Shown: piece by piece, positions 1-33,495 of the stretch
Layout: every line of letters begins with the position of its first letter
How positions within the stretch are numbered: the first letter of the stretch is position 1
Source: Monocercomonoides exilis PA203
Taxonomy: Eukaryota > Protista > Preaxostyla
DNA length: 64,000 bases
Assembly (NCBI GenBank): GCA_001643675.2
Contig: LSRY02000027.1
Coordinates: forward strand, 806,001-870,000
Direction of reading: 5' to 3'
Position numbers and translations under genes: made by a program
The notes under the pieces: model-generated
What the model saw: the letters and a program-made list of their open reading frames with translations, nothing else
What the model was told of the DNA's origin: nothing
Database searches by the model: none

Positions 1-2607
1 AGAAGAGAAGAAGATGAAGTTAATAAAGGACTTGAAAAAGTTAAATACAAATACACAAAAGAATCAAACGAAAATCGAAGAAAATTTGAAAAAGAAGGAG
101 AAAATGCAAAATTTCCAATGAAGAATTCTTCTTCATCAAAAGGAGCAGCAGCAACGCCAAATGCAATTTCATCACTAAAGCATTTAACTTGGAGATGGTT
201 AGAAGAACAATCTTCGTCGATATCTTCTTCTCTATGCACTTCAGCCTCTTCAACCGCATCTTGGTTCTCAATGCTTTCTCTTCTTCCCCACACCCCTTTT
301 CCTTCTTATCGGCAGCTTTCTTTCTTCTTTGCTGAGCAGCTCATATCTCCCTCTGCAGGCAAGTATTCTTTGCCACCGGAGGCGCTTTTGCCTGAAAAAG
401 GGGATTTCATTGGGATTGACTGTGAAAGTGTTATTCTCAACAGCAACGCTTTAGGAATCACATTGCCATTCAATTGGATTGCACACACAGAGCAAACATC
501 AACAGATTTGAAGAATACTTCAAATGAGAAAGCACCTTCAAAAATAGTTTCCACAGAAATGAAAGAGAATGATAGTGAAAATTCATCGATTTTTTCAAAG
601 AATACAATTTCTTTAATGCTTTCTAGGTATTTGGAAGCAAATCCAACAGTTCCTCTTTTTCCTCAAAAGAAAGTTGGAGATGGCTGGATTGTGTTCACTC
701 CAAGGAAACGGAATGTGTTTGCATTTAAAGACACATTGGAACCATCATCATTGTCTGTTAATGCGCAGAAAAAGCTTTGTTCTCGCCCATTTGCACTTCC
801 TAAATCGTTTCATGCTGCTTTCTTCTCTCCTTTCATTTCTGTTGTTGCATCGCCTGCTTATTCATCGCTTGTTTCTTCCTCTTCTTCTCTCACTTCATCA
901 CTCAACATTCTGTCTTCTTTCCATTCAATGGGCAGAGTTAGCCTTGTGACATTTCTGAATCCTACCTCAGCATCATCAAAGCATTATGCAAGCAATCTTT
1001 CCAACACTTCATCTGCGTTTAGCTATTCATCTTCTTCAACATCTGTGCCTCTCACATCAACTAGCGTGAATTCCGTTTCTTCTTCATTTTCTCCTCTTCA
1101 ACCTCCTCCTCTTCCTTTGAAAGCACGAGTCATCAGTGATGTTCTTGTTACACACACTATTAACGATGTCACGGATTACTTGACATTTGTTTCTGGGCTA
1201 CAGAAAGAAATGATTGATGAAAAGCAGCAAAAGAAGGAAGCTGGCGTGAAGAATGAGATTGGAGGCGGAATCAGTATTTCTCATTCTCACAAAAATTCTG
1301 CTCCATCTTCTTCTGGTTTGCATGCAGATTCCGCTTCTTCAGATCAAAAGTTTTTCTCATTTGCAGCAGGGTCATCAGCAATGACTTCTTTTCCTCAAGA
1401 GTCTTCTTCAATGCCGAATCTTCTTCCCCCATCATCATCGCGCCTTCCTCTTCTTCATCGCTCTGAAGTTGTCACGTTTCTTCAGTTTCTTGTGTGGCGT
1501 GGCTGTGTGTTTGTTGGGCATGCTGTGAACGGAGATGTTAACCAGTGCTCAATCTCTCCTGCCCCATCGCGCACTGCAGATACAGTTATACTCCTGAGAC
1601 TTCCATTTCGCAGGTTTCTTTCACTGAAAGTGTTGTGCTTGTGTGTGTGTGGATGGACAATGCAGACTGCAGAGCACTCTTCGGCAATTGATGCGTGGGG
1701 CGCACTGGCACTTTGGTTGTTTTATGTTTGCGTTGTGGGGAGACAGAGATGGCTCAGGAAAACATTGAGTCTTACGAATTTAAATGAAACGATCTCTTCA
1801 ACAGGAAGCGAAGGCAAAGAAAGTTTAGGATTGGAAAATGCGACAGTGCTTAAACAATTTGAGCAAGATGGAAGGGCACACATAGGTTCTGCTCATCGAC
1901 CTTATCCTCATATTCCAAGCATCGATGAACGAAAACATCGGAATGAGGAATCATTTGGGTGGGAAGAATTGTGCGACTCACTATTTCAAACATTTTCAGC
2001 ACATGAATCAAATCATTGCACAAATCAAATGAATCTCATTCGCTCGTTCATGTTATATCCAGAAACTGGAGACCCGTGGGAGTGGGGCAGAGGTCAATTT
2101 CTGGAAGAAAAGCTTATTGGAGATGTGGGCTCCGAAGATCTTTGTAGAGGTGATGTGGAAGATTTTGAAAGAAAAGGCGAATTTTTGTCGCATTTGATTA
2201 GCGGCTTGATTCCCACTCATACTTCAGAATTTGAGAAATCTAATCTATCGAGAAAAATGCCATTGCCACCGCAGCAGTATCTTTCTGAAGGTGTGGCTGG
2301 CGCAACTCATTCAGAATATTTCATCCCTCAGAATCCATTTTCTATGGCTTCGTCACAGATACTGAATGAGCCTCTTCCACGTCATTCATCATTTAACTTT
2401 TACAATTTGCAATCATCCAATCTACCATTACAGAATCAGAATTCTCCTTCTCATAGGCGTGTTCATCAAGACGTATTACTGAATGTACCTCAACGGTCGA
2501 AGCATGCACCATCATCTTCACCTTCTGAACTTCTCAAAGAATTTTTGGAGCATGCATACTTTGTAGCAAACAGAGAACGATGGGGTGTGCAAAAACATCA
2601 CAGATAA
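1..2607 (+). CDS. PAN2: PAN2-like poly(A) deadenylase, 3' part (left-arm copy; 5' end lies outside the window)
   Basis: Frame is open from base 1. DEDDh exonuclease motifs in PAN2 order: FIGIDCESV, MGRVSLV, DYLTFVSGL, LVWRGCVFVGHAVNGD, DTVILL..RRFLSLKVL, QTAEHSSAIDAWGALALW. Near-identical to the C-terminus of 36899..44956. Confidence 0.8.
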   Translation, partial: RREEDEVNKGLEKVKYKYTKESNENRRKFEKEGENAKFPMKNSSSSKGAAATPNAISSLKHLTWRWLEEQSSSISSSLCTSASSTASWFSMLSLLPHTPFPSYRQLSFFFAEQLISPSAGKYSLPPEALLPEKGDFIGIDCESVILNSNALGITLPFNWIAHTEQTSTDLKNTSNEKAPSKIVSTEMKENDSENSSIFSKNTISLMLSRYLEANPTVPLFPQKKVGDGWIVFTPRKRNVFAFKDTLEPSSLSVNAQKKLCSRPFALPKSFHAAFFSPFISVVASPAYSSLVSSSSSLTSSLNILSSFHSMGRVSLVTFLNPTSASSKHYASNLSNTSSAFSYSSSSTSVPLTSTSVNSVSSSFSPLQPPPLPLKARVISDVLVTHTINDVTDYLTFVSGLQKEMIDEKQQKKEAGVKNEIGGGISISHSHKNSAPSSSGLHADSASSDQKFFSFAAGSSAMTSFPQESSSMPNLLPPSSSRLPLLHRSEVVTFLQFLVWRGCVFVGHAVNGDVNQCSISPAPSRTADTVILLRLPFRRFLSLKVLCLCVCGWTMQTAEHSSAIDAWGALALWLFYVCVVGRQRWLRKTLSLTNLNETISSTGSEGKESLGLENATVLKQFEQDGRAHIGSAHRPYPHIPSIDERKHRNEESFGWEELCDSLFQTFSAHESNHCTNQMNLIRSFMLYPETGDPWEWGRGQFLEEKLIGDVGSEDLCRGDVEDFERKGEFLSHLISGLIPTHTSEFEKSNLSRKMPLPPQQYLSEGVAGATHSEYFIPQNPFSMASSQILNEPLPRHSSFNFYNLQSSNLPLQNQNSPSHRRVHQDVLLNVPQRSKHAPSSSPSELLKEFLEHAYFVANRERWGVQKHHR

Positions 2608-3242
2608 AGAAGGAAGGAAATATTATGGAAAAAAACAGATTTTGTCGGCATGTAACGTACTTTTGCTAATTCTCAAAAGATTCAACAAGATGTGTTGATA
2701 GATGTTCAAAAATCGCATTTGTGCAAAAACGTCAAAAAAAAAAATCCTGATCTTTTCTTTAATGAAAAATAAGTATAGCTCCTGTTAATATTAACATTTA
2801 AAGCTTTTTTCCTGATTAAAAGATATTTCATTTCAATTTTTAATGAATTTGCTTTTTTTTTCATCATCCGAATAATAATTCATATTAAATTTTCGATATG
2901 GATTATGAAATACAAAATCGTTGTATATTCATTTCTCGTTTTAGCTTGAAAAAATAATAACAATTAATTCATCCATGGATGAATGGGAACAAAACGCACT
3001 GTTCAAAAAATAACACAAATAGAGTTTTATTTCTAAAAAAAAGCAGGACTAAATGGATATAAAGCAATCAATAAAATTGAAATATTCATTTTCGACTCAA
3101 AATTCAAGTGATAAATAATCGCCTTTTTCATCAAAAAATCTATGAACAAACCCCAATAATATTATTTCTCAGAAATTTTTATTAGGTTTAAGAGAGGCTA
3201 TTGGTTTCAATTCCTTCACAACGAGTGAATTAGGGTATGATA

Positions 3243-3498
3243 TGGGTAATTATTTTTGTAATCATATTTTTTCAAACAAAATTTTCGGAAAGAAAAATTT
3301 CATTGAGCATTAACAAATGAACACTGAAAAATGAAATGGCTTATAAAAGATGTCTTCATCTTTATTTCAACAAAAACATTTGTTTGTGAAACTATTGGAA
3401 AGTATTTTGCATATAAATTCAAAATTTCTTTCCAAAGACTAACAACCTTTGAAAAACAGCGTTCCGAAAAAAGTTATGATTTCAAAAATAATCACCCA
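3243..3498. mobile_element. ~256-bp MITE with ~24-bp imperfect TIRs, TA-flanked (right end is a recombinant junction)
   Basis: TA|TGGGTAATTATTTTTGTAATCATA ... TATGATTTCAAAAATAATCACCCA|TA; no coding capacity; same-size relatives at 33499, 36007 and 58392. Confidence 0.75.
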
Positions 3499-3501
3499 TA
3501 T

Positions 3502-3502
<1 letters not shown>

Positions 3503-3541
<39 letters not shown>

Positions 3542-4040: not shown

Positions 4041-7000
4041 ATGTTCAAAGCACTTACGTTATTCATGATAATCTCGGCTCTTCATACAAATAATTTATGT
4101 GAATGTTTCTTATCTCAAATTATCCTGACAACAAATGTTCCAATTTATAACGAAATAGCCCAACTCAAATATTCTCCAAATTTGATTCAGCCACCACTTT
4201 TATGTGTGATAAACTTTTTTCGTAAAAAATGACACATTAATTATTTCAATAATCATTCATAAAACACACAGATACAAAATTTTCAACTCTTGTTTTCACA
4301 ACAAACTGCACCCTGAGTTTGCAGAAGTTGCAGTTGAGCCAAATGCCCGATAGTCACTTTCTTTCATCCAGTGATTCACCTGAAATCAGATTTCATTCCT
4401 GCATCATGTGCGTGGCAAATCCACAACAGAACAGCTTCATCAGCATTCGCTCCACAGTGCTGATTCTGAATAATCTGACAGTGCTGCTTCACCCTCCAGG
4501 GCACACCATCCAACCGCTGATCGATCCATCTTTGCAAAGTCTGAGCAGAAAGACTGCATATTCAATGCTGTCTGTTTCCTCGTCATCGTTTTCATCATTT
4601 TCACTGGAAGAATCTTTGCCGTTCTTTTCATCAAACACTCTGGAGCACCTCCACATCAGAAATACACACTTTTCCAACATTTCGCTGTCTCCTTCAGCTT
4701 TCCCCCAAAATGAAAAGCATACTGCTTCATGTTCCGCATGCACAATGCTGGCTGAACTGTCCATGTTTGAATGTGTCGAAAATGCACTGTATGGCAGCCT
4801 TTTTGAAAGCATCTGCAGGAAAGGAGGCTTTGCTTTTCTGAATTGCTCTTTTCACAAATGCAATCGTCAAAGAGAGTTAATTACCGAGCGAGTTGATACA
4901 TCTATTGCAAATGTTTCTTTATTCAGTGATGTGGACTTCATTATGACCAAAACTCATCAAGGAATTGGAGGGGCAATTTTTCATTCAGCAAATAGTTCTC
5001 TAAATATCAGAAGATGCTACTTTAGTAATTGTATGGTAAGTGAAAGCGGAGGTGCTGTTTGCTCAATATTCAATCAAAGAGTCGATGTAATGTATTCCAA
5101 TTTCTCTAATTGCAACGCTGATAAATACGGAGGAGGCTGCATAATATATAATGAATCATTTTTGATAATTCAAAAATGTTCATTTGAAAATTGTTCTGAT
5201 AAAAATGGAGGAGGAGCAATAAATCATCACACAAGTAATGAAAATGACATTATTGATCAATGCTTATTCCAAAACTGCAGATGCAATGGAACCGATCAAG
5301 GTGGTGGTGGAATTGACATTGGTTCATCATGCAAAACAATTATCAAAAATTGTGTATTTTCAAACTTGGTATCAGCAATTCTTGGAGGAGGAATAACCAT
5401 ACATACGCATCCCAGCCACGAATCAACATGTCGGCTCCTCTTTTGCTTATTCCGAAACAACACTTCCGAATCAGACGAAGGACACGATATTCACGTTGCA
5501 AACAATGTGACGTTATTGTTCAATGAGACATCGCTCGAGACTTGCCGAACATTCACCAACAAAGAACGGAGAGTGGTGGTGGCTGATGTCGAGTGCGATG
5601 GCTGGCTGCGGCGCATGAATTATCCGATTTATGTGAGCAGTGCCAGAGGAAGCGGAGAAGGGATGTGCGGTTGGGCAGAAAGAAAGTGCAAAACAATTGC
5701 CATTGCGCTCGAAATGCCGCTGTGGGGGATCGGAGCAGAGGACGAGCCTATTGTGCAGCTGGAGTCTGAAAGCCTGAGCGAATGTCCGCTTGTGGTTGAG
5801 AGGATAAAAGTGCTGGTGAAGGGCGTTTCAAACGAGCTGACTATCATCAGCAAAGACATCACTGCATCGCCTTTGCCACTGCAACAGCCGTTGATAAGTG
5901 TGGCTGGTGGTGAGTTGAGATGGACAAACTCTTCATTGATGCATGATCCGTCGATATCCTCTGAATGCCCTCTTGCACAGATCACTTCATCAGGAGTTTT
6001 TGTTCTTGAGGAATGCATAATCGCACCAGGAGGCGCACAATCAGCCGCTTCTGCCAGGTTCGAATCTCCCTTAATCCTTGTTGCATCTGCTGGAAAACTG
6101 AATCTGTTAAGCACCAAAATTGTGGGATTCTCGCTTGCGGATGCAGCAGCAATTTCAGTGGAGGGAGGATCCACAGTGTGCGCAAATGCAACATTTTCAG
6201 AGATTGTGAGAAGCTCAGGAAGTGGAGCAGCAATTCATGGCTCGCTTCAGAGCGCATGCACACTGGATCTGGACAACACTTCGCTGGCAAATTGCGGATG
6301 CAGCAGCAATGATGGAGGGGGGATCTGGGCAAGCCTTGGAGAAGGGAGCTTCATGGAAATTGGAAAGAGTTCACTGGCACTGTTCTCACAATGCACAGTT
6401 TCCAAGGAAGGACCTGCTTGCAGGGGTGGAGGGTCGTATGTAACTGTCTCTGGGGAAGATGCAAAATTCAAGTTCCAGCACGTTGATTTTCAGTCGTGCG
6501 ATGGGTGGAAAGGCAGAAACATGTTTGTGAGCGCTCCGCGTCTGAGCACAGTAATTAGCAGAGATTCGATTGCCTTTGGCACAGATAGCATGGAGGATGA
6601 CGATCTGATGGGATACGAAGACGGATTTGGCACAGATCCAGTGCCGCTGAAAGCCTTCCTGATTGAATTTGGAGGAAAAGGGTATGTTGGGGGAGAGAAA
6701 AGCCGCGACTTCAGAGGATGTGGCAGTAAAGAGTATCCATGCTGTTCAGTTCAGTACACAGGACTGCTGCTCTTTGAAAACACAAAAAGAATAATCGTGC
6801 TGAACAGCGGATTTGTCTGGAATGATGCAGCGGAGATGACTGGCCCAGCATGGGACATAGGGTGTACGGCACAGGAAAAGATCAGAGTTGGAGCATCACG
6901 AGCTGCAAATGCAGAAGCTATGATTGCTGCAAAAGCCAATACGGACATTACAAACGTGATGTTCGCTGTGCCCGGCAGATTGTCTCCTTCGGACTCGTCA

Positions 7001-10000
7001 AGCAATGCAGTGCTGATCCAGGGGCTGAACGGAACACTGAAGCTGTCTCTTTGCGGGATACAAATGGATCAGCAAACAGAAGCTGTGAGCTATGGGCTGA
7101 TTTGCATGAAGGGCGGGTCATTGGAGTGCATTCAATTCAATGCAGCGGGATTGCGCATGAGCGGAGTCAGCCTGTTTGTAATCGAGAATACGTGTGCCAG
7201 TGCAAGACTGGACAAGTTGTCGCTCACAAACACAACCACAACAGCGGAGACTGGACTGATTGAGGCAAAAGCAGGGAGCAGCATAGAACTGAGGAATTCG
7301 ACACTTGCTTGGCAAGACGGAGCGTTATGCTGCCACTTTGTAAAGATGAGCGACAGCGGAGCGGTTGATGCGAGCAGAAGTGCAGTTGTGCAGCTTGCGA
7401 ATAACACAGCCAGCAACATGATACTTGAAAGAAGCGGAGGATGCGTCGTCGAGGGGGTTGTGAAGTGCGGAAGCACGCTGATTGTTGTTGGAGGAGTGTT
7501 TGAGAACTGCACCAGCATCGACGGGAATGGCGGTGGGATTAGCGTGAAGCTGGAGAGCGGCTCGTCGATGCAGCTGGGGAATGCTGAGTGTGCTGTGGAG
7601 CTGAGGAAATGCGAGGCCCAGGAAAGGGATGCAGTGGGGTCGGGGAATGGAGGCGGGATATTCATTGAAATGATTGGCAATGCAGAAGATATATTGCTGG
7701 AATCTGCCCTGTTCAGCAACTGTGTTGCCGCAAGGGGCAATAATGTGTTTGTTGTTGCTGCAGACTTGTCGAGACTTATTACTCCTGAAAGAGTGAAAAT
7801 GGCAGTGAACTTGAGGGATATAAGGGGATTGAGCGGGTTTGAGAGGAGCACCACAAACGAGCAGTATGCAATTCCTCTGGTGGTGTATCTGTGGGATAAC
7901 TTCAGCGGGTGTGGATTTGCGGATGAGGAGAGTGGAGGCGACTTTAGTGCCTGCGGGTTTGAGCAGACACCGTGCAAGACACTTGATTACGAAATACTTC
8001 TTCGGCGCACAAAACAGTTTTCTTCCACATCCTCTCTTCCACTCTTCTCGCTTTGTGTTTCCTCAAGGTCTTATCTGAACGCAGCAGTGGCATTACACGA
8101 ACTCAACCCATCAAGCTCAGCGTCTGCACTCCCTTTTCCACACACTTGGCATTTGAACTTTCTCAATGGCAATGCATCTTCTGGATCGGAGTTTTCATTG
8201 ATTGGGAGCGCAGGAGATTCGGCTGTGGCTGTGAACAATTCTCTTGGGGGAGAGGAAAATGCAGCTATCACTTCGTCAATTGAGCTGACTGTGCGAAATC
8301 TGCAAATCATCCTTCCGATTGTGCAAACAGGAAGCAGAGCATGCATCATCTCTTCGAGTAAAATGCTGCACATCGACAAATGCACATTCAGCACAGGTGA
8401 AGAGCACAGACTCGGATGCTTCTTGCTCGAAATAGTTAAAGGCAGCTTTGATGGGAAAGATGTAGTGTTTGGCTCGAGCTCGTCTGCCGTCGATCTGACT
8501 TGCAAAGAATCAGCTGTCATGATCAGTCCGTTGAGTGCAACTTCTTTCATCAACTGCACATTCAGAAGCGTGCGCCACGCAGATGGAAACTCTTCCTGCA
8601 TTTCTGTCAAAGAAGGAGAAGAGGATGGAGAAGAAGAAGGAGAAACAGCAATTGAGATTGAAGACTGCACATTCGACGGTTGCAGCGTTTGCGCTGGAAG
8701 CGGCGTTGGAGGAGGGATCATGACAGCAAAAGGAAACCGTCAGAGGCTTTGGATAACCAATACTTCTTTGTGGAGATGCTCAGTGCCAAGCGACTCAGCG
8801 AGTGGCAGGGGCTTAGGGGGCGGACTGTTTGTCTCGTGTTGGGGCGCATCTTCCTTCAGGCTCGCCACTGTGTCATTTTCAGAATGCAATGCATGGAGAG
8901 GGAAGAACATGTTTGTTAGCTCGGACAACCTAAGTGAGAGAGTCACGAGGGAGTCAATGAACATTGTGATAGATGTTGAGATAGAGGAGGCACCAGACTT
9001 CGACGAGTTTTGCGGCTATGAGAATGAAGTCACTTCAACCGCTGTTCCGTTGGTGCTGTTTTTGCGAGATCCTCCACAACCCGTGCTCATTGGCGGAGAT
9101 TCTGCGGAGGAATGTCGGGTGTGTGGCTACATAGACTTTCCCTGTCCGTCGATTCCTTATGCTGTGGAGAACAGATTCAAAGAAGGAAAAGCAATCCTCA
9201 GGCTTCTCGAATCCTTCGCATTTCGCGATCATCTTGCTCTCAAAACACAAGAAATGTTCATCGACACAGCAGAAGAAAGACACAAGATTGCAGTGAATTC
9301 TGGAGGAAGCGGAGAAGAAATCGGCTTGATTGAGACCGGAAATGCGATCACATTCAATAACATCACTTTTCTCCTTCCTCCTTCGCTGTCGATGAGAGAA
9401 GTGCTCTTATTATGCTCAAGCTCCACTTGCATTGTGAACGGCTGCTCGGCTGAAATGAAAGAAGCAGGGCAGCAGCCATTGTTCGGGCTGTTTGCCGTTG
9501 AAGGGGGAAAATTGGTTGTGATGGATTTCGAAGTGTGCAACATGTTGTTTGGATCTGAATATCTGATATCTGTTCGGAGCATCGGAAGAAGCTCCGAGGC
9601 ACAACTGAGCAATGTGCACTGGGAGGGAGTGCAGAAAAGCGGCACAAGAGGGCTGATAGAAGTCGGACCAGGGTGTATCCTAAAAGTTGAAAAGAGCGGA
9701 TTTGGAAATGCAGAGGAAGTGAGCTGCTGCATGATTGAGGCGAACGGGAAGGCAGATGTGACAATATTAGACACACTGTTTAATGGAGTCACTCGCGGAA
9801 CAGGAAAAGGGGCAGCATTCAGCGGGAATTTCGATGAAGACGGGTCAGCCACTTTTAGAAACAACACATTTGACAGATGCAAGTGCGCTGCAGAACTGAC
9901 AGGAGGAGCAATATATGCAAATGTGGAATCAAGAGGGCAGTTGATATTCGACAACAACTCCGTGAGTTCGTGCGAGGTGCCAACAGTCGAAGGATTGGGA

Positions 10001-13000
10001 GGTGGGCTGTACGTGAAACTGGGAGCCATGGATACCCACTACTCCATGATGAACGATAACTTCGGGCAGAACAAGGCATATCTGGGAAGAGATGTGTTCA
10101 TGGTGTGTCCTTCGCCCCGCAACATGATCGATATAGCGCATTGGGAAGGATCTGCAGTTGAAGGGCAGGATAGCAGCACGCTATGGACTGCAGACAGCGA
10201 TGTTTCGGCGCAGATCAGCGAAACTATTTTGAGGTTTCTATTTCCCCCCAAAACTGACATCGTGTTCGTGATGGCAGGAGGATCCAATGAAAGCGATTGT
10301 GGAGACGACCTAAAGCCATGTGGCGATCTGTATGAAGGCTTTAGAAAAATGGACGAGTCAAAAATGTTTCTGCACATCAACGATTCAGGCAGGATCAGCA
10401 AGAAAATGGAAAGAGATAATGCTCCCCTGACGTTGAGAGGCAGCCAAGCAGAAAGATCGATTCTTTATGTGGAGTCAGGTGGCTGTCTGTCTCAGACTCG
10501 CGGTGATTCTTCGACAAGCATGACTGTCACCGATCTGATCATAATGCTACCAACATCCAGTTCTGTTGATGCTGTGATAAGCGGGAGTGCAGGGAAAATA
10601 TTTATTACGAAGTGTGCAATCCAGCTGGCAGCAGGCACCACAAACGAGGAGTCGGCATGCACAACGATGTGGATTGCCAAAGGATGTGGCAGCAGCATCC
10701 GCTTCAACAATGTGTCTGTGCCAGGCATCGTCTTTTCAGGAAAAGGAGGAGTTGCTGTGGTAGATGGTGGAGAGCTGATCGTTTCTCACTTGACCGCTTT
10801 GGATGTGTCGGCACATGGCCAGGAGCATGGATTGATACAGGCAGTCAATGCAAAGAATGTGAAAGTCGAATATTCTGAAGTGGCTGTCTGCTCATCATCT
10901 GAAGGGCCATTTATTAGCATTACTGGGGTTCATGCAACAGAAATATCAGGGAACTGTTCCTTCAGATGCTGTAGCAATGGGGCTGAGAATGGAGAAGGCG
11001 GGTTTATGCTGTGCCAGCTGGATAACAAAGAATGCTTGAAAATGCGAAATACATCGATTTCTGAGTGCAGTGTGGATCAAAGCAGCGGAAAAGGAGGAGG
11101 CCTGCTATTAAGCTTGGGAAATAACTCAAACAGCAATTTTTCTCTGGAGAGCATTTCATTTGCCGGAAATAGCGGGAAGTATGGTCGAGATGTATTTGTT
11201 GTATGCAAAGCATTGAACGAGAGTATTGCTTCCAGTCGATTTGTGTCGATTGCTGGGGACAGAGAAAATGGGAAAGCCGATATGGCCGGAACAGATTCGG
11301 ACCTATTTCGCGGAAAAGTGGTGGATCTGGATTTGCTGTTGACGCAGTATTGCTCGAGCGAAATCTGTGTGTCTTCAGAAGGTTTGGATGTGCTGGGATG
11401 TGGAAAGAAGGAGATGGCGTGCCACACATTCTGGAGAGGCGTGCAGAATATGGAAAGAGATTCTCTTTTGAAAGTCTTGGAGATCAGAGACGAGACATGC
11501 TTGGCTGATTATCATAACCTCTCAACGTTTGTTTTGGAGCATGAGAAACAGGAATCGTCGATCGCTGAGCTTGCGAGGGTAATTGTAATGGATGGAGTTG
11601 AAGCAAACAGCAGGAAATGTGTCCTTCTGAACGAGTTGTCGCTGACCATCAGGAGGATAGAATTTGTCATTCCTCCGATTATTTCAGATGACATTAATGC
11701 ACTTCTGCTCAGCGAGGCGCCAGCTGAGATAATCACGATGGATGCGTGCTCATTTTCGACAGCAAGTGCCGAATCAGTTGGATACCATGTGCTTGAGACA
11801 AGATCAGGAAAAAGTGAGATCGTCAATACGACAATCATTAACATGGCTTTTGCGGTTTCTCCTTTCAACTTATTGGCAGATACCTATTTTGAGGGAGGTT
11901 TATATGAAAATGTCAGTTCTTCTAAGTGTAGTGCTGGCGGAGTTCAGATGGTTGTGTTGGATGCGCTTGATGAATTTGTCATGACGAACACAACAGGCAG
12001 AAACTGCAGCTGCTCGACGGCAAGCGGAAGAGGGGGTTTTTTGTATTTGGATTGTAACGAAAGCGCATCATCAACCCCATTTAGCTTGCATGGCGTCGAT
12101 TTTAGTGAAAACAACGCAAATGTTGGGAAGAATATGTTTCTTGTCTCGTCTGACTTGAATGCAACTGTGACCAATGCAAGCTTTGATTTTTTGTGGGGGC
12201 CAAGCAGCGCAGACGGCGAGCTGTATGTGGGGAAAGACATGGTGTTCGACGAATGCGACTTATTCAAGTTTCTTGTTGATTACCGTTCATCAACAATTCA
12301 TATATCTGATAAAGGTCATGATTTTGCTCGCTGTGGAAGCTCTGAGGAGCCTTGCTTGTCGTTATGGCAAGGAATCGCACACTGTGCTGGAGAGGTAGTT
12401 TCAAAAGCATTAATCATTGAAGGTTCGGCAGAAGTCAATGATTCATACAACATGACTAATTATGCGTTTTCCTCTGGTACAGACGATACAGAGGAACAGG
12501 AATATTCTTCTCTGATATTTGACAAAAAGAGTTCAAGAGAAGGCGAAACTTTTATAGAGAACTCAGGAGAATTGAAGTTTGGGCTGATAAAGTTTGTGCT
12601 AACGGAAGACTTTGATAATGAGATAAAAGCAGTGATAAATCATGCAAAGGGGAGACTTGAGCTGAGCAATTGCTTGTTGCAGTCGAGAAAGGAAAACGGA
12701 AATCACAGGCAAGGATTTGTTGCGGCAAAGCAGGGCTCGGTGAAAGTTCATTCCCTTTCAATAGAAAGCGTGAATATGATATATTCTGTCTTTACGATAA
12801 CATCAGGATGCGAGTGTGTGCTAAAGAGCCTTCAAATGCACTCGTGCAGCATCGAAAGCGGGAGCGTGCTGATGGAGATAGAAGAATCCGCCAGTCAAAA
12901 TGAAGAGAAGGAAACACACATCTCTTTGGACGAATCGTATTTTGCACTATGTGTTGCTCATCAAAACGGGCCGAGCATTATATGCTGCCGCGGAAGAAGC

Positions 13001-16000
13001 ACAACGACTCTTGCGATCAACAGCTCATGCTTTGATGGGTGTAAAGCTCTGAGCTCAGAGAAAGGAGGCGCTGTATTCTTTGAGTTGAACGAAAGGGGAT
13101 CGCTTGAGATGAAGCAGTCAAATGTGTCTCAGTGCGGATGCTCGCCCGAGACTGGAAAAGGAGGAGGCATTTATGTGAAATCGCAGCTGTTTGGGGAGCT
13201 GAACTTTATTTTTGACAAGTGCAAATTTTCCGGAAACAGCGGATGGAAAGGAAGAGACATATTTGTGGAGTGCATCGAGATCTCGAAGCAGGTGAACGAC
13301 ACTCAGTTCAAGATGGATTTGAGGGAAAACGAGTACAACAGGAGCAATGCTATCTTCGGGATCGATATTGCAAACGAAGCGCCTATTGATCTGTTTGACT
13401 TCATATCAACGCTGCTGCAAAGCACAATATTTGTCTCTTCTTCGGCAAGCAGGGGTGGTAATAATGGGCGGCAATGTGGCACTTTTTCTCGCCCATGCAA
13501 AAGTGTGAATTATGGGCTGGGCCATCTTGTTGCTGATTACGAATGCAGATTACTTGTGGATCTGGAAAGCGTGGTAGACGGGATGATGGAACTGTCAGAC
13601 ATGATACTGAAATCCTTGGCGCAATCCATTGCGCGTGTAAGGATTGAGATAGGAACGGCTCGGCAAGGAGATCCAGCAATCAGGATTGGCGGAAATGTGA
13701 TCGTTGAGAACATAGGATTTATCTTTGCAAGATCTCTTGTTTCTGGTTGTGATATCCTATTTCTTGTAGAAGATGCGGCTTTGTCGATGGAGTCGTGCGA
13801 AGTGTGCTCAAACAAGACTGAGGGTACAGCACATACAGTACCTTGCGCTCTTCGATGCACAGCAGGTTCAATAAAAATGGCAAAGTCTGCAATAACGAAA
13901 ATAAGAGGGATACGCCTGATTGAGCTGTTCAATTCGACAATGGAACTGAAAGAAGTTGACATCATAGATGCTGAAGCAAGCAAATGCTTCTTTGCTCTGG
14001 ACAGCTCGGACATTGTTCTGAAAGATGCAACACTTCGCGATCTGCGCATTGATGATGGCTCGGTTTTCTGTTCAAGCAGCAGCACTTTGGGGAATATTCT
14101 GTCAATGGGTATTTCAGTATTTCAGAACATTACTCGCCCATCGTTTGGAGCTTCATTAGCTGAACTTGAAAACGAAAAAACGAAAATAAGCATGGTGAAC
14201 TGCTCGGTTTACGAATGCACAATAGATGATGTTACAGGATCTTCAATCGAGAAGTGCGATCCAGCAAAAGTGTCGAATTTGAGAGTTGCACTTTTGCTGG
14301 GGCAAGAGATGAGATATCTCATGAATTACCAAAATTAGAGGGCATTTGCCAATGGAATGAATCGATGCTTGCGTTTTGGAAGTGCATAACCTTGATAAAA
14401 GACACAACAATATGCAACTCTTCGCGAGGGGGAGTGTATGTTTCCGACGGAGCAATGACAATTGAGAAGGGAGAATTCACGGAAAACAATCCACTCGTCA
14501 GTGGATATCCATCGATGCGTAGAAATGTTGCTTGCTCAGGCAGTGGAACAGTGAATGTGGTGAGCTTGAAAGGAGGAGATGGGGTGAAGGATAATTCATC
14601 GTTATGGATGTTGAATGAAGGGTGCAGTTTTGAAGGGATTGTTTCAGAAAGAGCATCATCATTTTTCATTCCTGTGCTAGAGTCTGTAGAAATAGAAGAA
14701 GCCGGAAACGAAATGAGGTTGGCATTTGCAGGGCTGCTTCTTCTTCCATGCAATCTATCATTCAAGGTTGTTAGCAGCATTGGTGATGAGGAGGCTATTG
14801 AAACGAAGATGTTCGACGAGGATGGGTTTGTTTCTGAGAAAGAAGTGGAGGGACTGATTGCAGCGAGCACAATCACAGGAGCCGGGGCAGAGGTGGAAGT
14901 GAAGACAGCAATCGAGTATTGGAGCTCTGGAAAGTGTGGGATAACTTCATGGTGGATCCTGAAAAATATCACAGAGCAAAGGAAAGAGTACGAAGTACAA
15001 ACTAACTTGGATAAAAAAGAGGGATCAATGTGGCCAGTTATTGTTGCTGTAATGTCAATAATACTTTTAATTGTCCTCATTGCATCCATTGCCGTTACAA
15101 TAAGATGGAGAAAGTCAAAAAGACGAACGGAGGAATTAGAAGAGATTGTGAATGATAACATCAGAAAGGATCCGAAGGCGTTTGAGATGGTGACGATGGA
15201 GATGTCGCCGGAGGAGCAGTGGAGGAGAGTGGCAGGGGATGTCGAGAAGAAGGACGATGAGAGGATAAAGAAGAGGGTGTATGAGAAAAGCTTGGGACAC
15301 TCGGAGTCATCTGAGCATTTGCTGAGTGAGAGCGGTTCCACAGAATATATTCTTGGAAAGGACTCAGACAACATTCCCGATTGGGTATTGGAGAAAGTTG
15401 AGGAAGAAGAAGAAGAGATAAGGAAGAGAACACCATCACCTTCCATCTCGTCCACTTCAACAACAGACACTTCAGACACAGAATCGACTTTTGTTCGGGG
15501 GGAGGATCTGTGCCCAACTACCTCATCGATGTCTAACTTGGTGGATGCAATGGCATGTTCTTCGCCTCATGAGAAGCTCATTGTGGATCTGAGGGATTCG
15601 CTGTTCATGTTGTTGCATGGAAGGAATGAAAAGAAGGAGATGGCGATTGGCACATTGAAGGAGAGAGAACAAACAGCTGCTCAAATCCTGTTCTGGGTGG
15701 CTAACCTTGCTCTCCACTCCTTTGATGAAATGGAAAATTCACTTCAATCATTAGCCAATTTGAGTCCCCACATTGTATTGTTCTCTGAACACATGGTCAT
15801 CTGCATTGTCATGCACTCAGACTTCTTGTCTGATGATGATTCAGACTCGTCTTCCATCTCCTCATCAACTGTTGTGACTTCTGCCAGCGATGATGATGAT
15901 GATGACTCTCTGCCCTCATCCGCCTTTGAGGATGAGGATGACTTCAAAAAGGAGTGCCTGAGATGGAAGGCACCAGAGCTGTTGATCAACAAGAAGATGG

Positions 16001-16356
16001 GAGCAACAAAGGAGTCAGTTGCCTTTTCGATTGGAATGATGCTGTGGGAGTGCTTGACGCTCCAGATCCCGTTCGGGGAGTATGAAGCAGAGGTGGCGGG
16101 ACAGAAGATTGTGAACGGAGAAAGACCAGATTTAAGAAAAGTGCTGGAATCTTCATACGCAGAGGTGCTGCATCACGCTTTTTCTCCTCAGCAAGGCAAC
16201 CGCCCAACGCTAATTGCAATGAAAAGGGAGTTTATTCAGCGTTTCCCAGCAGGCACTGTGATGCTCACAGTTTCAGATGCCATCGATTTCGAGAACGAAA
16301 GCGAAGGAGAGGGCAGCACTGCCATGGAATCAAGGTCCTTGTCGAGCAGCAGTTGA
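4041..16356 (+). CDS. Giant single-pass receptor-like protein, copy A (~4,100 aa): signal peptide, Cys/Gly-rich beta-helix (Pmp/pectin-lyase-like) ectodomain, TM, TKL-like pseudokinase C-lobe
   Basis: ORFs 4319..14338 and 14254..16356 are joined by a 2-bp insertion at ~14250 (ATCGAGAAGTG vs ATCGAAGTG in copy B). A hydrophobic exon starting at ATG 4041 (MFKALTLFMIISALHT) splices in frame via GT..CAG 4222-4271; donor 4204 is also in frame. GGAI/GGGxYV and FxxNxAxxGxDxFV repeats; TM WPVIVAVMSIILLIVLIASIAVTI-RWRK; RWKAPE..SIGMMLWE..PF..GERP. Confidence 0.85.
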
Positions 16357-18450
16357 TTTCTGGCATTTTTTCTGTTGAGCAGCAGTATATAATTGATGAA
16401 TTCTAAGAAGAGGAAATTGCCGGACTGTAATTTCTCGCTGCCGGCGTGAGCAAACAGAATATTTGTAACATAAATATCGGATTTTGGATGAATTAATGTT
16501 GCAGTAAAAAGGCCGCGAAAACATGTAAATTTCTGAGTCGGAAATAGGAAAGACTGACGAATAAAAATAAATGTGGTTGTTCATTTTGCTTGCCAATCAG
16601 AAGGGATTCCAATATGCTCCATTCAATCGATTTTTTGTTTCTTCTTTTTTGGATCATATCACTTCTCTCTCAAAGAGCGAGGCGTGCAACAAGCACACAA
16701 TCAAACAATTGTGCCAATTGGCAGATTTCTGATTCTTAGCCAATAAAAATCGTTCCGACTTGATGATATGCCTTATTTGCGAATAAACTAAAAAATATTT
16801 ATATTGTCATTTTATCTTTAAAAAAATAAAATAAAATAAATTCTGTATAGAAGTACCAATAAATAATGAATTTTACCATTGGATGTTGCTGACGTTGTTG
16901 GCATCTTAAATTTTGAGCTTCAAGCTGTGCCCTGCACAAATCCTTGGGGAAGTGGCATATTCAGCACGTCGAGTCAACCAATCTCCATATCAAAGTGCAT
17001 TGAAAAAATCATTTGAAATAGCAAATAAATTATAAAGTCATACTTCCACTGTTAAAGGCCTGTTTTGGTTTTTATTTGACTTTTTATAATTTGGAAAAAA
17101 TGTTTTCAAACCCAGTTGCGGCTTATCAGAAACTTAGAGTCGATTAAAAATAATAAAACGTATAAATCATTGCGGGTAAAAGTGCTGATTGTGGGATGAT
17201 TCATTGGCAATCTCATTAACAATCCTAACATAAATATTTTTATGGTTGCCTTTTTTATACCGAGCATTTTTGAAAAAATCACAGCAAAATTAATATATAT
17301 TTTTATTGGGAGAAAATTAAACTGAAGCACGAATAAGCATGATTTTGTGACGGCTTTTAACCTTTTCTGATTTTTTTTTTCTATTTAAAGAGATCTTGAG
17401 TATTTTCAATTAATATCCAACATTTTCTGCTTCTTTTCTTTTAAAAAACCATTTCACTTCTTCTGTTTGTTTTTATCATGCAGTCATGAAACAAACAAAA
17501 ATATCTTTCGTTTATTTTTATTTCAAAGAGTTGTGCTCTTTTCCATTTTATTGATTTTTGTGTGACAAAAACTAATTATTACTCAAAATTGTTGAACTTG
17601 TTATTTGAGATTATTAAACTAATAATTCAAAATTAATCAAATTGAGTATTTATTAACAAAACATTTTATGTGAAAAATTAGTTTTTGGCTGAATGCCGGA
17701 AAGTGCTGAAAATATTATATTCAGTCAATATTCGTTAAAACGATGAAAAATTGAACCTCTATTTTTAATAATTGTCAATAAACATAAAAATATTCACTTT
17801 TTCAGAAAATATCAACAAAGATGGAATCTGCGTATTTTCAAAATTATTTCTTTTTTGATTATTAATTAATAATCCAAGAAATATTTTAAAAGAAATTATT
17901 TTATAGAGGGAAGTTATACACCACAATTCAAAAACCTGAGTTTTATAGTATTTAACCACTTATTATTCATTTACAAGCCAGAATTTATATTAAAAACCTC
18001 CGGGCTTTTGAGAAAACTCTCTTTTGAATTATGGAAAAAATGAATTCTATTTAAGGGATGGATCTATTTTGATCACGTTGATGTCTCACTTTCCAGATCG
18101 CAAATCAAATATTTCTCAAAAAACGAAATTATTCCAAGATAATGAAGCAACATAGAATTGACTAATGAGATTTTAATAATTTGCAGCGAACAGAAGATGC
18201 CTTAAGTGTTTAAAAATTTTCTTCATAGAAGCTAGAGATAGTTGCAGGTATCATATGTGTTTCAGGCGTATAAAATACTGTTTATAATTGGAAATCACTT
18301 TTTTGTTATTTTCAAAAATACCTATCGAGAAAATTGTGATGATATTTTTGTGTTTCTGGATGAACAAAGAAATATATGGGTAATTCTTTTTGAAAAGTCG
18401 CAAATGTTTGAATTTCAAATAAATCAAAAATTTTACATTTTGCTCAAATT

Positions 18451-18544
18451 TCTGTTTCCACTCGCGAATCTTCTTAAGTTTGCTTGAAATAGAATTATCC
18501 AGAAATAGATATTTTTTCTGTGAAACTTGGTGTATGTCAACAAT
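18451..18544. other. Unique 94-bp spacer (loop) of the palindrome
   Basis: Arm complementarity ends at 18450/18545. Confidence 0.9.
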
Positions 18545-20647
18545 AATTTGAGCAAAATGTAAAATTTTTGATTTATTTGAAATTCAAACATTTGCGACTT
18601 TTCAAAAAGAATTACCCATATATTTCTTTGTTCATCCAGAGACACAAAAATATCATCACAATTTTCTCGATAGGTATTTTTGAAAATATCAAAAAAGTGA
18701 TTTCCAATTATAAACAGTATTTTATACGCCTGAAACACATATGATACCTGCAACTATCTCTAGCTTCAATGAATAAAATTTTTCAACACATAAGGCATCT
18801 TCTGTTCGCTATAAATGGTTAAAATCTCATTAGTCAATTCTATGTTGCTTCATTATCTTGGAATAATTTCGTTTTTTGAGAAATATTTGATTTGCGATCT
18901 GGAAAGTGAGACATCAACGTGATCAAAATAGATCCATCCCTTAAATAGAATTCATTTTTTCCATAATTCAAAAGAGAGTTTTCTCAAAAGCCCGGAGGTT
19001 TTTAATATAAATTCTGGCTTGTAAATGAATAATAAGTGGTTAAATACTATAAAACTCAGGTTTTTGAATTGTGGTGTATAACTTCCCTCTATAAAATAAT
19101 TTCTTTTAAAATATTTCTTGGATTATTAATTAATAATCAAAAAAGAAATAATTTTGAAAATACGCAGATTCCATCTTTGTTGATATTTTCTGAAAAAGTG
19201 AATATTTTTATGTTTATTGACAATTATTAAAAATAGAGGTTCAATTTTTCATCGTTTTAACGAATATTGACTGAATATAATATTTTCAGCACTTTCCGGC
19301 ATTCAGCCAAAAACTAATTTTTCACATAAAATGTTTTGTTAATAAATACTCAATTTGATTAATTTTGAATTATTAGTTTAATAATCTCAAATAACAAGTT
19401 CAACAATTTTGAGTAATAATTAGTTTTTGTCACACAAAAATCAATAAAATGGAAAAGAGCACAACTCTTTGAAATAAAAATAAACGAAAGATATTTTTGT
19501 TTGTTTCATGACTGCATGATAAAAAACAAACAGAAGAAGTGAAATGGTTTTTTTAAAAGAAAAAGAAGCAGAAAATGTTGGATATTAATTGAAAATACTC
19601 AAGATCTCTTTAAATAGAAAAAAAAAAATCAGAAAAGGTTAAAAGCCGTCACAAAATCATGCTTATTCGTGCTTCAGTTTAATTTTCTCCCAATAAAAAT
19701 ATATATTAATTTTGCTGTGATTTTTTTCAAAAAATGCTCGGTATAAAAAAAGGCAACCATAAAAATATTTATGTTAGGATTGTTAATGAGATTGCCAATG
19801 AATCATCCCACAATCAGCACTTTTACCCGCAATGATTTATACGTTTTATTATTTTTAATCGACTCTAAGTTTCTGATAAGCCGCAACTGGGTTTGAAAAC
19901 ATTTTTTTCCAAATTATAAAAAGTCAAATAAAAACCAAAACAGGCCTTTAACAGTGGAAGTATGACTTTATAATTTATTTGCTATTTCAAATGATTTTTT
20001 TCAATGCACTTTGATATGGAGATTGGTTGACTCGACGTGCTGAATATGCCACTTCCCCAAGGATTTGTGCAGGGCACAGCTTGAAGCTCAAAATTTAAGA
20101 TGCCAACAACGTCAGCAACATCCAATGGTAAAATTCATTATTTATTGGTACTTCTATACAGAATTTATTTTATTTTATTTTTTTAAAGATAAAATGACAA
20201 TATAAATATTTTTTAGTTTATTCGCAAATAAGGCATATCATCAAGTCGGAACGATTTTTATTGGCTAAGAATCAGAAATCTGCCAATTGGCACAATTGTT
20301 TGATTGTGTGCTTGTTGCACGCCTCGCTCTTTGAGAGAGAAGTGATATGATCCAAAAAAGAAGAAACAAAAAATCGATTGAATGGAGCATATTGGAATCC
20401 CTTCTGATTGGCAAGCAAAATGAACAACCACATTTATTTTTATTCGTCAGTCTTTCCTATTTCCGACTCAGAAATTTACATGTTTTCGCGGCCTTTTTAC
20501 TGCAACATTAATTCATCCAAAATCCGATATTTATGTTACAAATATTCTGTTTGCTCACGCCGGCAGCGAGAAATTACAGTCCGGCAATTTCCTCTTCTTA
20601 GAATTCATCAATTATATACTGCTGCTCAACAGAAAAAATGCCAGAAA

Positions 20648-23600
20648 TCAACTGCTGCTCGACAAGGACCTTGATTCCATGGCAGTGCTGCCCTCTCCTT
20701 CGCTTTCGTTCTCGAAATCGATGGCATCTGAAACTGTGAGCATCACAGTGCCTGCTGGGAAACGCTGAATAAACTCCCTTTTCATTGCAATTAGCGTTGG
20801 GCGGTTGCCTTGCTGAGGAGAAAAAAGCGTGATGCAGCACCTCTGCGTATGAAGATTCCAGCACTTTTCTTAAATCTGGTCTTTCTCCGTTCACAATCTT
20901 CTGTCCCGCCACCTCTGCTTCATACTCCCCGAACGGGATCTGGAGCGTCAAGCACTCCCACAGCATCATTCCAATCGAAAAGGCAACTGACTCCTTTGTT
21001 GCTCCCATCTTCTTGTTGATCAACAGCTCTGGTGCCTTCCATCTCAGGCACTCCTTTTTGAAGTCATCCTCATCCTCAAAGGCGGATGAGGGCAGAGAGT
21101 CATCATCATCATCATCGCTGGCAGAAGTCACAACAGTTGATGAGGAGATGGAAGACGAGTCTGAATCATCATCAGACAAGAAGTCTGAGTGCATGACAAT
21201 GCAGATGACCATGTGTTCAGAGAACAATACAATGTGGGGACTCAAATTGGCTAATGATTGAAGTGAATTTTCCATTTCATCAAAGGAGTGGAGAGCAAGG
21301 TTAGCCACCCAGAACAGGATTTGAGCAGCTGTTTGTTCTCTCTCCTTCAATGTGCCAATCGCCATCTCCTTCTTTTCATTCCTTCCATGCAACAACATGA
21401 ACAGCGAATCCCTCAGATCCACAATGAGCTTCTCATGAGGCGAAGAACATGCCATTGCATCCACCAAGTTAGACATCGATGAGGTAGTTGGGCACAGATC
21501 CTCCCCCGAACAAAAGTCGATTCTGTGTCTGAAGTGTCTGTTGTTGAAGTGGACGAGATGGAAGGTGATGGTGTTCTCTTCCTTATCTCTTCTTCTTCTT
21601 CCTCAACTTTCTCCAATACCCAATCGGGAATGTTGTCTGAGTCCTTTCCAAGAATATATTCTGTGGAACCGCTCTCACTCAGCAAATGCTCAGATGACTC
21701 CGAGTGTCCCAAGCTTTTCTCATACACCCTCTTCTTTATCCTCTCATCGTCCTTCTTCTCGACATCCCCTGCCACTCTCCTCCACTGCTCCTCCGGCGAC
21801 ATCTCCATCGTCACCATCTCAAACGCCTTCGGATCCTTTCTGATGTTATCATTCACAATCTCTTCTAATTCCTCCGTTCGTCTTTTTGACTTTCTCCATC
21901 TTATTGTAACGGCAATGGATGCAATGAGGACAATTAAAAGTATTATTGACATTACAGCAACAATAACTGGCCACATTGATCCCTCTTTTTTATCCAAGTT
22001 AGTTTGTACTTCGTACTCTTTCCTTTGCTCTGTGATATTTTTCAGGATCCACCATGAAGTTATCCCACACTTTCCAGAGCTCCAATACTCGATTGCTGTC
22101 TTCACTTCCACCTCTGCCCCGGCTCCTGTGATTGTGCTCGCTGCAATCAGTCCCTCCACTTCTTTCTCAGAAACAAACCCATCCTCGTCGAACATCTTCG
22201 TTTCAATAGCCTCCTCATCACCAATGCTGCTAACAACCTTGAATGATAGATTGCATGGAAGAAGAAGCAGCCCTGCAAATGCCAACCTCATTTCGTTTCC
22301 GGCTTCTTCTATTTCTACAGACTCTAGCACAGGAATGAAAAATGATGATGCTCTTTCTGAAACAATCCCTTCAAAACTGCACCCTTCATTCAACATCCAT
22401 AACGATGAATTATCCTTCACCCCATCTCCTCCTTTCAAGCTCACCACATTCACTGTTCCACTGCCTGAGCAAGCAACATTTCTACGCATCGATGGATATC
22501 CACTGACGAGTGGATTGTTTTCCGTGAATTCTCCCTTCTCAATTGTCATTGCTCCGTCGGAAACATACACTCCCCCTCGCGAAGAGTTGCATATTGTTGT
22601 GTCTTTTATCAAGGTTATGCACTTCCAAAACGCAAGCATCGATTCATTCCATTGGCAAATGCCCTCTAATTTTGGTAATTCATGAGATATCTCATCTCTT
22701 GCCCCAGCAAAAGTGCAACTCTCAAATTCGACACTTTTGCTGGATCGCACTTCGATTGAAGATCCTGTAACATCATCTATTGTGCATTCGTAAACCGAGC
22801 AGTTCACCATGCTTATTTTCGTTTTTTCGTTTTCAAGTTCAGCTAATGAAGCTCCAAACGATGGGCGAGTAATGTTCTGAAATACTGAAATACCCATTGA
22901 CAGAATATTCCCCAAAGTGCTGCTGCTTGAACAGAAAACCGAGCCATCATCAATGCGCAGATCGCGAAGTGTTGCATCTTTCAGAACAATGTCCGAGCTG
23001 TCCAGAGCAAAGAAGCATTTGCTTGCTTCAGCATCTATGATGTCAACTTCTTTCAGTTCCATTGTCGAATTGAACAGCTCAATCAGGCGTATCCCTCTTA
23101 TTTTCGTTATTGCAGACTTTGCCATTTTTATTGAACCTGCTGTGCATCGAAGAGCGCAAGGTACTGTATGTGCTGTACCCTCAGTCTTGTTTGAGCACAC
23201 TTCGCACGACTCCATCGACAAAGCCGCATCTTCTACAAGAAATAGGATATCACAACCAGAAACAAGAGATCTTGCAAAGATAAATCCTATGTTCTCAACG
23301 ATCACATTTCCGCCAATCCTGATTGCTGGATCTCCTTGCCGAGCCGTTCCTATCTCAATCCTTACACGCGCAATGGATTGCGCCAAGGATTTCAGTATCA
23401 TGTCTGACAGTTCCATCATCCCGTCTACCACGCTTTCCAGATCCACAAGTAATCTGCATTCGTAATCAGCAACAAGATGGCCCAGCCCATAATTCACACT
23501 TTTGCATGGGCGAGAAAAAGTGCCACATTGCCGCCCATTATTACCACCCCTGCTTGCCGAAGAAGAGACAAATATTGTGCTTTGCAGCAGCGTTGATATG

Positions 23601-32600: not shown

Positions 32601-32961
32601 CAGGAATGAAACCTGATTTCAGGTGAATCACTGGATGAAAGAAAGTGACTATCGGGCATTTGGCTCAAGTGCAACTTCTGCAAATTCAGGGTGCAGTTTG
32701 TTGTGAAAACAAGAGTTGAAAATTTTGTATCTGTGTGTTTTATGAATGATTATTGAAATAATTAATGTGTCATATTTTACGAAAAAAGTTTATCACACAT
32801 AAAAGTGGTGGCTTAATCAAATTTGGAGAATATTTGAGTTGGGCTATTTCGTCATAAATTGGAATATTTGTTGTCAGGATAATTTGAGATAAGAAACATT
32901 CACAAAAATTATTTGTATGAAGAGCCGAGATTGTCATGAATAACGTTAGTGCTTTGAACAT
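20648..32961 (-). CDS. Giant receptor-like protein, copy B (mirror of copy A)
   Basis: ORFs 21413..32683 and 20598..21476. One-base shifts in homopolymers at ~21503-21507 (G5 vs G6 in copy A) and ~20821-20826 (T6 vs T5). Predicted signal exon 32961-32781 and intron 32731-32780. Stop mirrored at 20648-20650. Confidence 0.85.

Positions 32962-33458: not shown

Positions 33459-33495
<37 letters not shown>

Follow-up and report, generated by a model that had tools for sequence, protein, structure and literature searches.

Gene conversion opposed by selection is the subject of a general theory. Conversion from arm to arm is known from the ampliconic palindromes of the primate Y chromosome, and segmental conversion serves antigenic variation at Anaplasma msp2/p44, Borrelia vlsE, Neisseria pilE/pilS and the trypanosome VSG genes. 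Monocercomonoides exilis, a gut protist and the source of the DNA analysed here, is the first known eukaryote without a mitochondrion. The present work deals with a hypervariable cassette in two giant receptor-like genes of its strain PA203, which lie in the arms of a palindrome within a stretch of 64,000 nucleotides (contig LSRY02000027.1, hereafter C22, positions 806001-870000; the whole stretch is referred to as the window). Concerted evolution with an island of divergence has been described for csd and fem and their hypervariable region in Hymenoptera (PMC3990544), and diversifying conversion has been reviewed (PMC3924843). In the case of M. exilis, the two palindromic genes and two further copies on the same contig are nearly identical over most of their length and deeply diverged in one short segment. 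The explanation favoured here, with moderate confidence, is that conversion homogenises the genes but spares old alleles of a recognition surface, which are exchanged from time to time. Evolution of this kind is known, and is unpublished for M. exilis.

The family to which these genes belong appears in the genome papers as the largest gene family, the “protein tyrosine kinases” of the TKL group, overlapping unclassified repeats (PMC6759080, PMC8767320). Neither of these two papers mentions palindromes, gene conversion or a hypervariable region for the family, no published account of a variable segment, palindromes or gene conversion in it was found, and the literature offered analogies only. 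The features on which the comparison of the two arms rests are as follows.

3475-33522, no strand: palindrome core, centred near 18500, 98.3% identity by self-alignment
4343-16356, plus strand: gene A, with an ectodomain open reading frame (ORF) to 14338, a frame change and then ORF 14254-16356 (membrane span and kinase remnant)
20598-32683, minus strand: gene B, MONOS_4007 (P0001), the mirror copy of gene A
4867-5244, plus strand: hypervariable cassette, copy A, residues 175-301 counted from the Met at 4343, first beta-helix coils
31758-32135, minus strand: hypervariable cassette, copy B, in the mirror arm, gene MONOS_4007

Position p of arm A pairs with position 37002-p of arm B. Between the paired cassettes, 114 of the 378 positions differ with zero gaps, whereas the remaining arm differs at 105 of 14,595 positions (0.72%), a rate at which 2.7 differences would be expected in the cassette (Poisson P = 9e-139). 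The original prediction, made from the sequence alone, had described an indel-free hypervariable cassette of ~380 bp inside near-identical arms, with copy B at 31757-32136, and its coordinates for both copies and its peptide readings proved correct. Its further statement that synonymous sites differ as well was borne out by a synonymous divergence (dS) of 1.13 between A and B in the cassette against 0.016-0.017 in the flanks; here and below, dS and its nonsynonymous counterpart dN were calculated by the Nei-Gojobori method. The segment is also AT-richer than the rest of the gene, as had been noticed, with a GC content at third codon positions (GC3) of 0.22-0.24 against 0.43-0.55 elsewhere. Each coil keeps its glycine pairs, its cysteines and phenylalanines and its inward-pointing aliphatic residues, in line with the kept scaffold that had been reported. 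The equivalent segment claimed for a third paralog in the window was found between an N.SF..C motif at 53559 and a DWL motif at 52791, and GC3 is modestly lower in the interval.

Two other close copies are located on the same contig, D at C22:975539 (plus strand) and E at C22:360195 (minus strand). Copy E is 96% identical to A over 4357-14771, while D matches A over 4304-7949 and 15015-18304, the tail of D lying inside a 7.5-kb palindrome of its own. Over A 4341-7934 all four copies are 96-99% identical, and A and E remain so as far as 14536, apart from 4841-5234: in 100-base windows across 4441-7934 they differ from one another by 0-9 bases, compared with 15-49 per pair at 4841-5234, and the divergence of E extends to 5434. 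The four copies harbour three cassette types, namely A, D and a type shared by B and E, with identities of 69.8% (A-B), 76.3% (A-D), 68.0% (A-E), 71.8% (B-D), 93.4% (B-E) and 69.1% (D-E). The cassette of E, at C22:359290-359673, is 450 kb away from arm B. Aligned against each other, the four copies resolve the variable region into a mosaic.

4790-4924, plus strand: left patch, two haplotypes only, A=D and B=E (as at 4867-4907), with 15 of 16 informative sites supporting AD/BE
4925-5161, plus strand: cassette core, three allele types (A, D and B with E), D having a compensating 6-base deletion and insertion
5162-5245, plus strand: right patches, A=D and B=E at 5162-5189, then B=D=E with A distinct at 5190-5243
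5246-5440, plus strand: continued variable zone, coils 5-7, homogenised in A, B and D and diverged in E only

Within 4865-4924 there are zero differences inside either haplotype and a dS of 1.2 between the haplotypes. In the zone 5246-5440, 51 sites are private to E, and dS reaches 1.2-1.3 in comparisons with E against 0.05-0.18 among A, B and D. The grouping of the copies changes along the gene: the parsimony-informative sites of the 3′ flank (5441-7940) support AB/DE over AD/BE by 19 to 3, and those of 4790-5245 support AD/BE over AB/DE by 52 to 4 (Fisher P = 1.7e-11 for the switch). Such a change of partition requires at least one non-reciprocal exchange between the loci, and in the simplest case arm B would carry an E-like tract of ~455-520 bases. 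Since the cores of B and E have diverged more (7%) than their flanks, the flanks must have been homogenised further after the two cassette lineages split.

The age of the segment can be judged from the substitution rates. Over the cassette, dS amounts to 1.1-1.8, that is, it is saturated, dN to 0.24-0.39 and dN/dS to 0.2-0.35. The corresponding values for the core and the flanks are given below.

Cassette core: dS 1.1-1.8 (saturated), dN 0.33-0.39, dN/dS 0.21-0.35
Core, B against E: dS 0.30, dN 0.041, dN/dS 0.14
Flanks: dS 0.016-0.10, dN 0.006-0.046, dN/dS mostly 0.3-0.6

Saturated dS in the cassette next to the tiny dS of the flanks, together with dN/dS below 1, means that the patch did not arise through recent positive selection on fresh duplicates. 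Judged by its divergence, the cassette is a seat of old alleles kept under purifying constraint. The dN/dS calculation, which the original prediction had proposed as a check, gave values below 1 in all of the comparisons, although this test of selection is low-powered, dS being saturated in the deep comparisons.

The same values bring into play a neutral conversion cold spot, i.e. AT-rich coils that are refractory to conversion, either by their low GC or, once diverged, by heteroduplex rejection through mismatch repair, and that drift apart without selection for diversity. The dN/dS of the island (0.2-0.35) is about equal to that of the flanks (0.3-0.5), as such drift would have it, and the dip in GC3 is family-wide, 26 distant paralogs having a mean of 0.27 in the zone against 0.36 and 0.41 in the flanks. 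Moreover, GC3 at 5246-5440 is 0.31 in the version common to A, B and D and 0.17 in the diverged version of E. Conversion nevertheless does enter the zone, as witnessed by the A=D and B=E patches and by the homogenisation of 5246-5440 in three copies, and the variation avoids scaffold positions, though purifying selection alone would give the same. A neutral cold spot is accordingly rated as rather improbable. The GC3 dip is in itself suggestive of GC-biased conversion acting on the common chassis of the genes and, it would seem, seldom on the coils.

A single accidental import would be a simpler account of the arms, in which an E-like tract of ~455-520 bases overwrote arm B after the palindrome had formed and has not yet been erased by conversion between the arms, neither selection nor any special property of the segment being involved. 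It agrees with the fact that B and E share every informative site at 4790-4924 and are 93% identical across the cassette, with a tract length typical of mitotic conversion, and with the position of the cassette in the outer, less homogenised part of the arm. The dS between B and E, on the other hand, is 0.30 in the core and only 0.04-0.09 in the flanks, and the unique core of D and the private island of E at 5246-5440 are left unexplained. Left unexplained as well is the recurrence of the island at the same coils elsewhere in the family. Among 45 N-terminal loci surveyed, the same island, at query residues ~181-370, was present in at least six other close paralog pairs belonging to unrelated subfamilies. 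The most extreme is the pair L015/L023, in which the 472 flank codons are identical and the surrounding 3 kb of DNA almost so, whereas the 146 codons of the cassette contain 180 differences (dN 0.46, dS 1.66). In the pair L058/L059 the flanks are 0-1% different and the island 30-42%, and L038/L045, L014/L049, L017/L026 and L051/L054 show a weaker form of the same pattern. A single import is therefore considered unlikely. The heads of the palindromic pair L024/L025 are identical, which means that a divergent island is not obligatory. Together with the avoidance of scaffold positions, the recurrence at the same coils is suggestive only as to a possible selection for divergence.

The pair L015/L023 deserves some further description. 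The two loci (C35:34081-38850 and C67:4338-9113) are identical over 4.7 kb except for the cassette. The copy on C67 lies 6 kb from a contig end, and the two may be one locus assembled twice, in which case the difference would be a polymorphism within the culture. Many matches of the family are equal-scoring inverted pairs 4-46 kb apart (on C44, C46, C50, C58, C29, C25, C80 and C98), from which it follows that palindromic duplication, both of family genes and of short head-only ORFs, is common.

As to the origin of the cassettes, the original prediction had offered import by segmental gene conversion from another paralog, with a donor or silent cassette to be sought genome-wide. A DNA search of the whole genome (82.3 Mb in 101 contigs) with the cassettes of A, B, D and E matched the four genes only and yielded no donor or silent copy for any of the four versions, and a protein search gave nothing above 39% amino-acid identity outside the four-gene clade. 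The A cassette finds its closest match beyond itself in copy D, at 76%, and its core occurs nowhere else in the genome; the cores of A and D, being unique in the assembly, were not copied from another assembled paralog. The exchange part of the proposal thus stands, given the switch of partition and the 93% identity of B and E, and the near-identical donor is missing. In the same way, no silent donor archive of the type used in programmed antigenic variation and matching the A, B, D or E cassette was found in the genome. The contig carrying the A cassette is identical in sequencing runs of 2016, 2022 and 2024; contigs hide rare variants, and switching at low frequency is compatible with this identity.

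Mutagenesis by a diversity-generating retroelement was also considered. Neither a template copy nor an adenine bias was detected, no search having been made for a reverse transcriptase. The substitutions involve all bases (e.g. A>T 21, T>C 20, G>A 11, C>T 10), and it is this mixed spectrum, along with the missing template, that ruled out mutagenesis of this sort.

What remains to be weighed under this head is a dedicated local diversifier, which by targeted mutagenesis or templated rewriting would make a new cassette for each fresh duplicate. L015 and L023 are what such a device might leave behind, since their flanks and the surrounding non-coding sequence are identical, the 180 differences all fall within 146 codons, and neither version recurs, a DNA search of the genome with either cassette giving no other match. 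On the contrary, the A cassette did not change between 2016 and 2024, discrete haplotypes are common to several copies, and dN/dS well below 1 with saturated dS is unlike a recent mutational burst; the all-base spectrum without adenine bias and the lack of a template copy point the same way. A diversifier that equips every fresh duplicate is for these reasons held to be very improbable, and rewriting of the first coils by a dedicated mechanism in general, be it targeted or templated from a source outside the assembly, quite improbable. Were it true, fresh duplicates would acquire a unique recognition cassette while their surroundings stay identical.

Since M. exilis PA203 was assembled from nanopore reads and polished with ten Pilon rounds (PMC8767320), an assembly or polishing artefact, either a patch of a paralog written into one arm or an artificial palindrome, had to be taken into account, all the more as the paralogs are near-identical and small indels occur in both arms at a G run and a GA repeat. 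The original prediction had itself named a mis-assembled or mis-polished patch as the finding that would overturn it. For this purpose, Logan contigs of four public runs were inspected over 4300-5800, two of them DNA runs of one sample (2016, 2022) and two RNA libraries from another study (2024). A 354-base contig identical to 4910-5263 was present in all four runs, i.e. in both studies, and the B, D and E versions were also found, as separate contigs or loose ends. In run X2, word depth was 105-112 in the A, D and E cassette contigs and 185-305 in the flanks common to the copies, depth not being equal to copy number. As contigs from 2016, 2022 and 2024 carry all four versions, the cassette is not a polishing artefact, and mis-polishing was ruled out as its cause. 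An artificial palindrome accords poorly with its position in the middle of the contig, with the 91% identity of its outer arms and with the presence in one arm of a 2.5-kb insertion that the other lacks. With the four versions recovered as separate short-read contigs from DNA and RNA libraries of two studies, at similar depths in X2, an artefact is regarded as extremely improbable.

In addition, the B cassette is carried exactly by MONOS_4007, an annotated M. exilis protein, and the D cassette exactly by MONOS_13257 (EukProt listing). The occurrence of cassette versions in the RNA libraries is consistent with transcription, of which it is no proof. One DNA contig of run X2 follows the A cassette to 5177 and then continues with 255 bases of unrelated AT-rich sequence; it may represent a truncated extra copy or a structural variant absent from the assembly.

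The gene product appears to be a type-I membrane protein, to judge from its sequence: in the annotated model an upstream exon opens with what resembles a signal peptide and is followed by an ectodomain of ~3,600 residues and a single membrane span, read by eye in ORF 14254-16356 as a ~25-residue hydrophobic stretch with a basic cluster behind it. The tail matches PF07714 (E 1e-6, 28.8 bits against a cut-off of 23.1) at profile positions 162-257 only, which correspond to the C-lobe, and no HRD or DFG motif was evident in it by eye. The 3,339-residue ORF matches no Pfam family at E <= 0.01, including PF13229 Beta_helix and PF02415 Chlam_PMP, which are carried only by distant database matches of the protein. 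For residues 1-470, AlphaFold2 modelling on 44 family sequences gave a mean predicted local distance difference test score (pLDDT) of 81, rising to ~90 over residues 190-420, and a structure of three-stranded coils with a period of ~27 residues. Alignment of model residues 175-427 by VIA-align led to right-handed parallel beta-helices of phage tailspikes, polysaccharide lyases and epimerases (Z 19-20, root-mean-square deviation 2.7-2.9 Å over 210-225 residues), and it is through these that the fold was named, Foldseek against the PDB having returned weak rows only. The domain occupies the following position.

4865-5623, plus strand: first right-handed parallel beta-helix domain, residues 175-427, the cassette being its N-terminal half

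Because the match to the beta-helix starts at the first cassette residue, the cassette encodes the first coils. Across residues 184-289, the positions conserved in 40 distant family members were taken as scaffold, and 8 of these 31 positions are variable among the four copies compared with 48 of the 73 others (Fisher P = 2e-4), the changes falling in turns and at alternate strand positions of the coils. The terms “receptor tip” and “ligand-binding surface” used in the original prediction are hence reasonable in so far as the cassette forms the opening coils of the beta-helix domain nearest the N-terminus and varies off the scaffold, binding being putative.

Taken as a mechanism, homogenisation with escape of old alleles would operate as follows. 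Copies A, B, D and E form a four-member clade of giant type-I receptor-like proteins, and conversion, both arm-to-arm and between loci, would hold almost the entire ectodomain coding region at 96-100% identity. A segment of ~380-580 bases encoding the first coils would be left out of this homogenisation and would so retain old, constrained alleles. Now and then, short conversion tracts would shift whole cassettes or sub-patches between the copies; this would account for the E-like cassette of arm B and for the distant relationship of arm A's version to that of D. The outcome would be a common chassis with a different recognition surface for each gene. The island may persist through selection for distinct binding specificities, probably with the help of a heteroduplex barrier raised by the high divergence, and the surface might bind a ligand, plausibly a glycan given the fold. 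The idea of a surface shielded by selection, put forward in the original prediction, fares accordingly in two parts: escape from homogenisation is supported by dS and by the at least six recurrences, and selection, with dN/dS at 0.2-0.35, is not shown.

Several points weigh against the escape of old recognition alleles as described. Positive selection was not detected, dN/dS staying under 1 for all pairs, and the same picture would be expected of a neutral conversion cold spot. The island might persist through selection for specificities or as a mechanical cold spot, dN/dS bearing no sign of positive selection. The present sequence of E, given the 7% difference in the core, is no recent donor for B. 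A palindrome born by inverted duplication would start with identical cassettes, so that at least one import would be needed, and A is without a donor. The surface-facing orientation of the variation is likely on the strength of scaffold conservation and repeat register, rather than of model geometry. Ten rounds of polishing with short reads (PMC8767320) may, among paralogs this similar, have raised the apparent identity of the flanks somewhat. Finally, both A and B are frameshifted as assembled, and either of the two may be in decay: compared with B and E, gene A contains a 2-base insertion at 14249, while in gene B a G run is one base shorter at the mirror of A 15497, where the annotated protein ends. 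Each of these changes breaks the frame in comparison with the intact copy E (4,067 codons), and they may reflect either real decay or nanopore homopolymer errors.

The remainder of the palindrome extends on both sides of its core.

1-3504 and 36001-39505: outer arms, 91% identity, the right arm broken by a 2.5-kb insertion

Arm identity drops outward, from 100% over 9500-16600 through ~98-99% further out to 91% in the outermost 3.9 kb, an exception being ~400 mismatched bases at the palindrome centre (18081-18480). In the inner 7 kb of the arms the sole differences are the GA insertion in A (14249), a G6/G5 run (15497, mirror 21505) and a T5/T6 run (16178). The palindrome runs ~3.9 kb past the start of the window at 91% identity, continuing to C22:802143, and together with window positions 1-43384 it covers at least 47 kb with two genes per arm. 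The insertion present in the right arm only (33494-36268) has inverted repeats of ~270 bases at both ends (33494-33764 against 36268-36001, 74%). Copies related to it are found at 3238-3540 and 58389-58677. None of its ORFs reaches 150 codons, and it is possibly a transposon of the non-autonomous kind. An ORF of 2,685 codons on the minus strand (36899-44956) has a strong GC skew and internal repeats of ~270 bases that match hundreds of genome sites at 70-80%, with weak collagen-like matches only in Pfam.

The tail of E (membrane span and kinase remnant; A 14537-16600) is ~55-85% identical to that of A although the ectodomains are 96% identical, and copy D (region 18427-25971) shares the tail of A without A's 7950-15014. 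Such a mismatch in E and D between the identity of tails and that of ectodomains indicates that the two have been reshuffled independently.

The locus shows the plan of the family, a chassis kept uniform by conversion, together with a single short stretch of old sequence, specific to each gene, where the outermost beta-helix begins. This cassette is the part most likely to set what each receptor recognises in the gut, and offers a target of 130-190 residues for binding studies. With at least 1,980 first-look family candidates in a genome reported as monoploid (PMC6759080), the family is a natural system in which homogenising conversion and maintained divergence can be followed in many replicates within one haploid genome. 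For annotation, one must bear in mind that the only differences by which the copies of this family can be told apart may be lost from view through repeat masking and polishing with short reads.

Several known systems lend themselves to comparison with the locus. With regard to the fold, coils of ~27 residues, each consisting of a GGAI-type strand and an F..C/N strand, resemble Chlam_PMP (PF02415) and Beta_helix (PF13229); unlike Chlam_PMP and the beta-helix adhesins and tailspikes, the protein studied here comes from a eukaryote, sits in the membrane as a type-I protein and ends in a kinase remnant, and it has Cys in place of the Asn of FxxN. The conserved flanks, the central hypervariable cassette and the mosaic of patches between copies are shared with msp2/p44, vlsE, pilE/pilS and VSG, but no matching silent donor exists here, all four copies are full-length genes, the A cassette has been stable from 2016 to 2024, and nothing points to a single expression site or rapid switching. 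As in the palindromes of the primate Y chromosome, gene-bearing inverted arms of tens of kb are maintained here at 98-100% identity; in contrast to those palindromes, identity falls from the centre (100%, ~98%, 91%) and one short coding segment is 30% different and has been exchanged with a copy outside the palindrome. Like csd and fem, the paralogs are homogenised over most of their length, while a short segment is deeply diverged and has a tree different from that of the flanks, with dS of 0.016-0.10 in the flanks against 1.1-1.8 in the island and a tree switch at P = 1.7e-11, which is the signature of concerted evolution with an island. Unlike csd and fem, the present case concerns a family of hundreds of receptor genes of 8-12 kb, palindromic, with many independent pairs diverged at the same coils and with putative selection.

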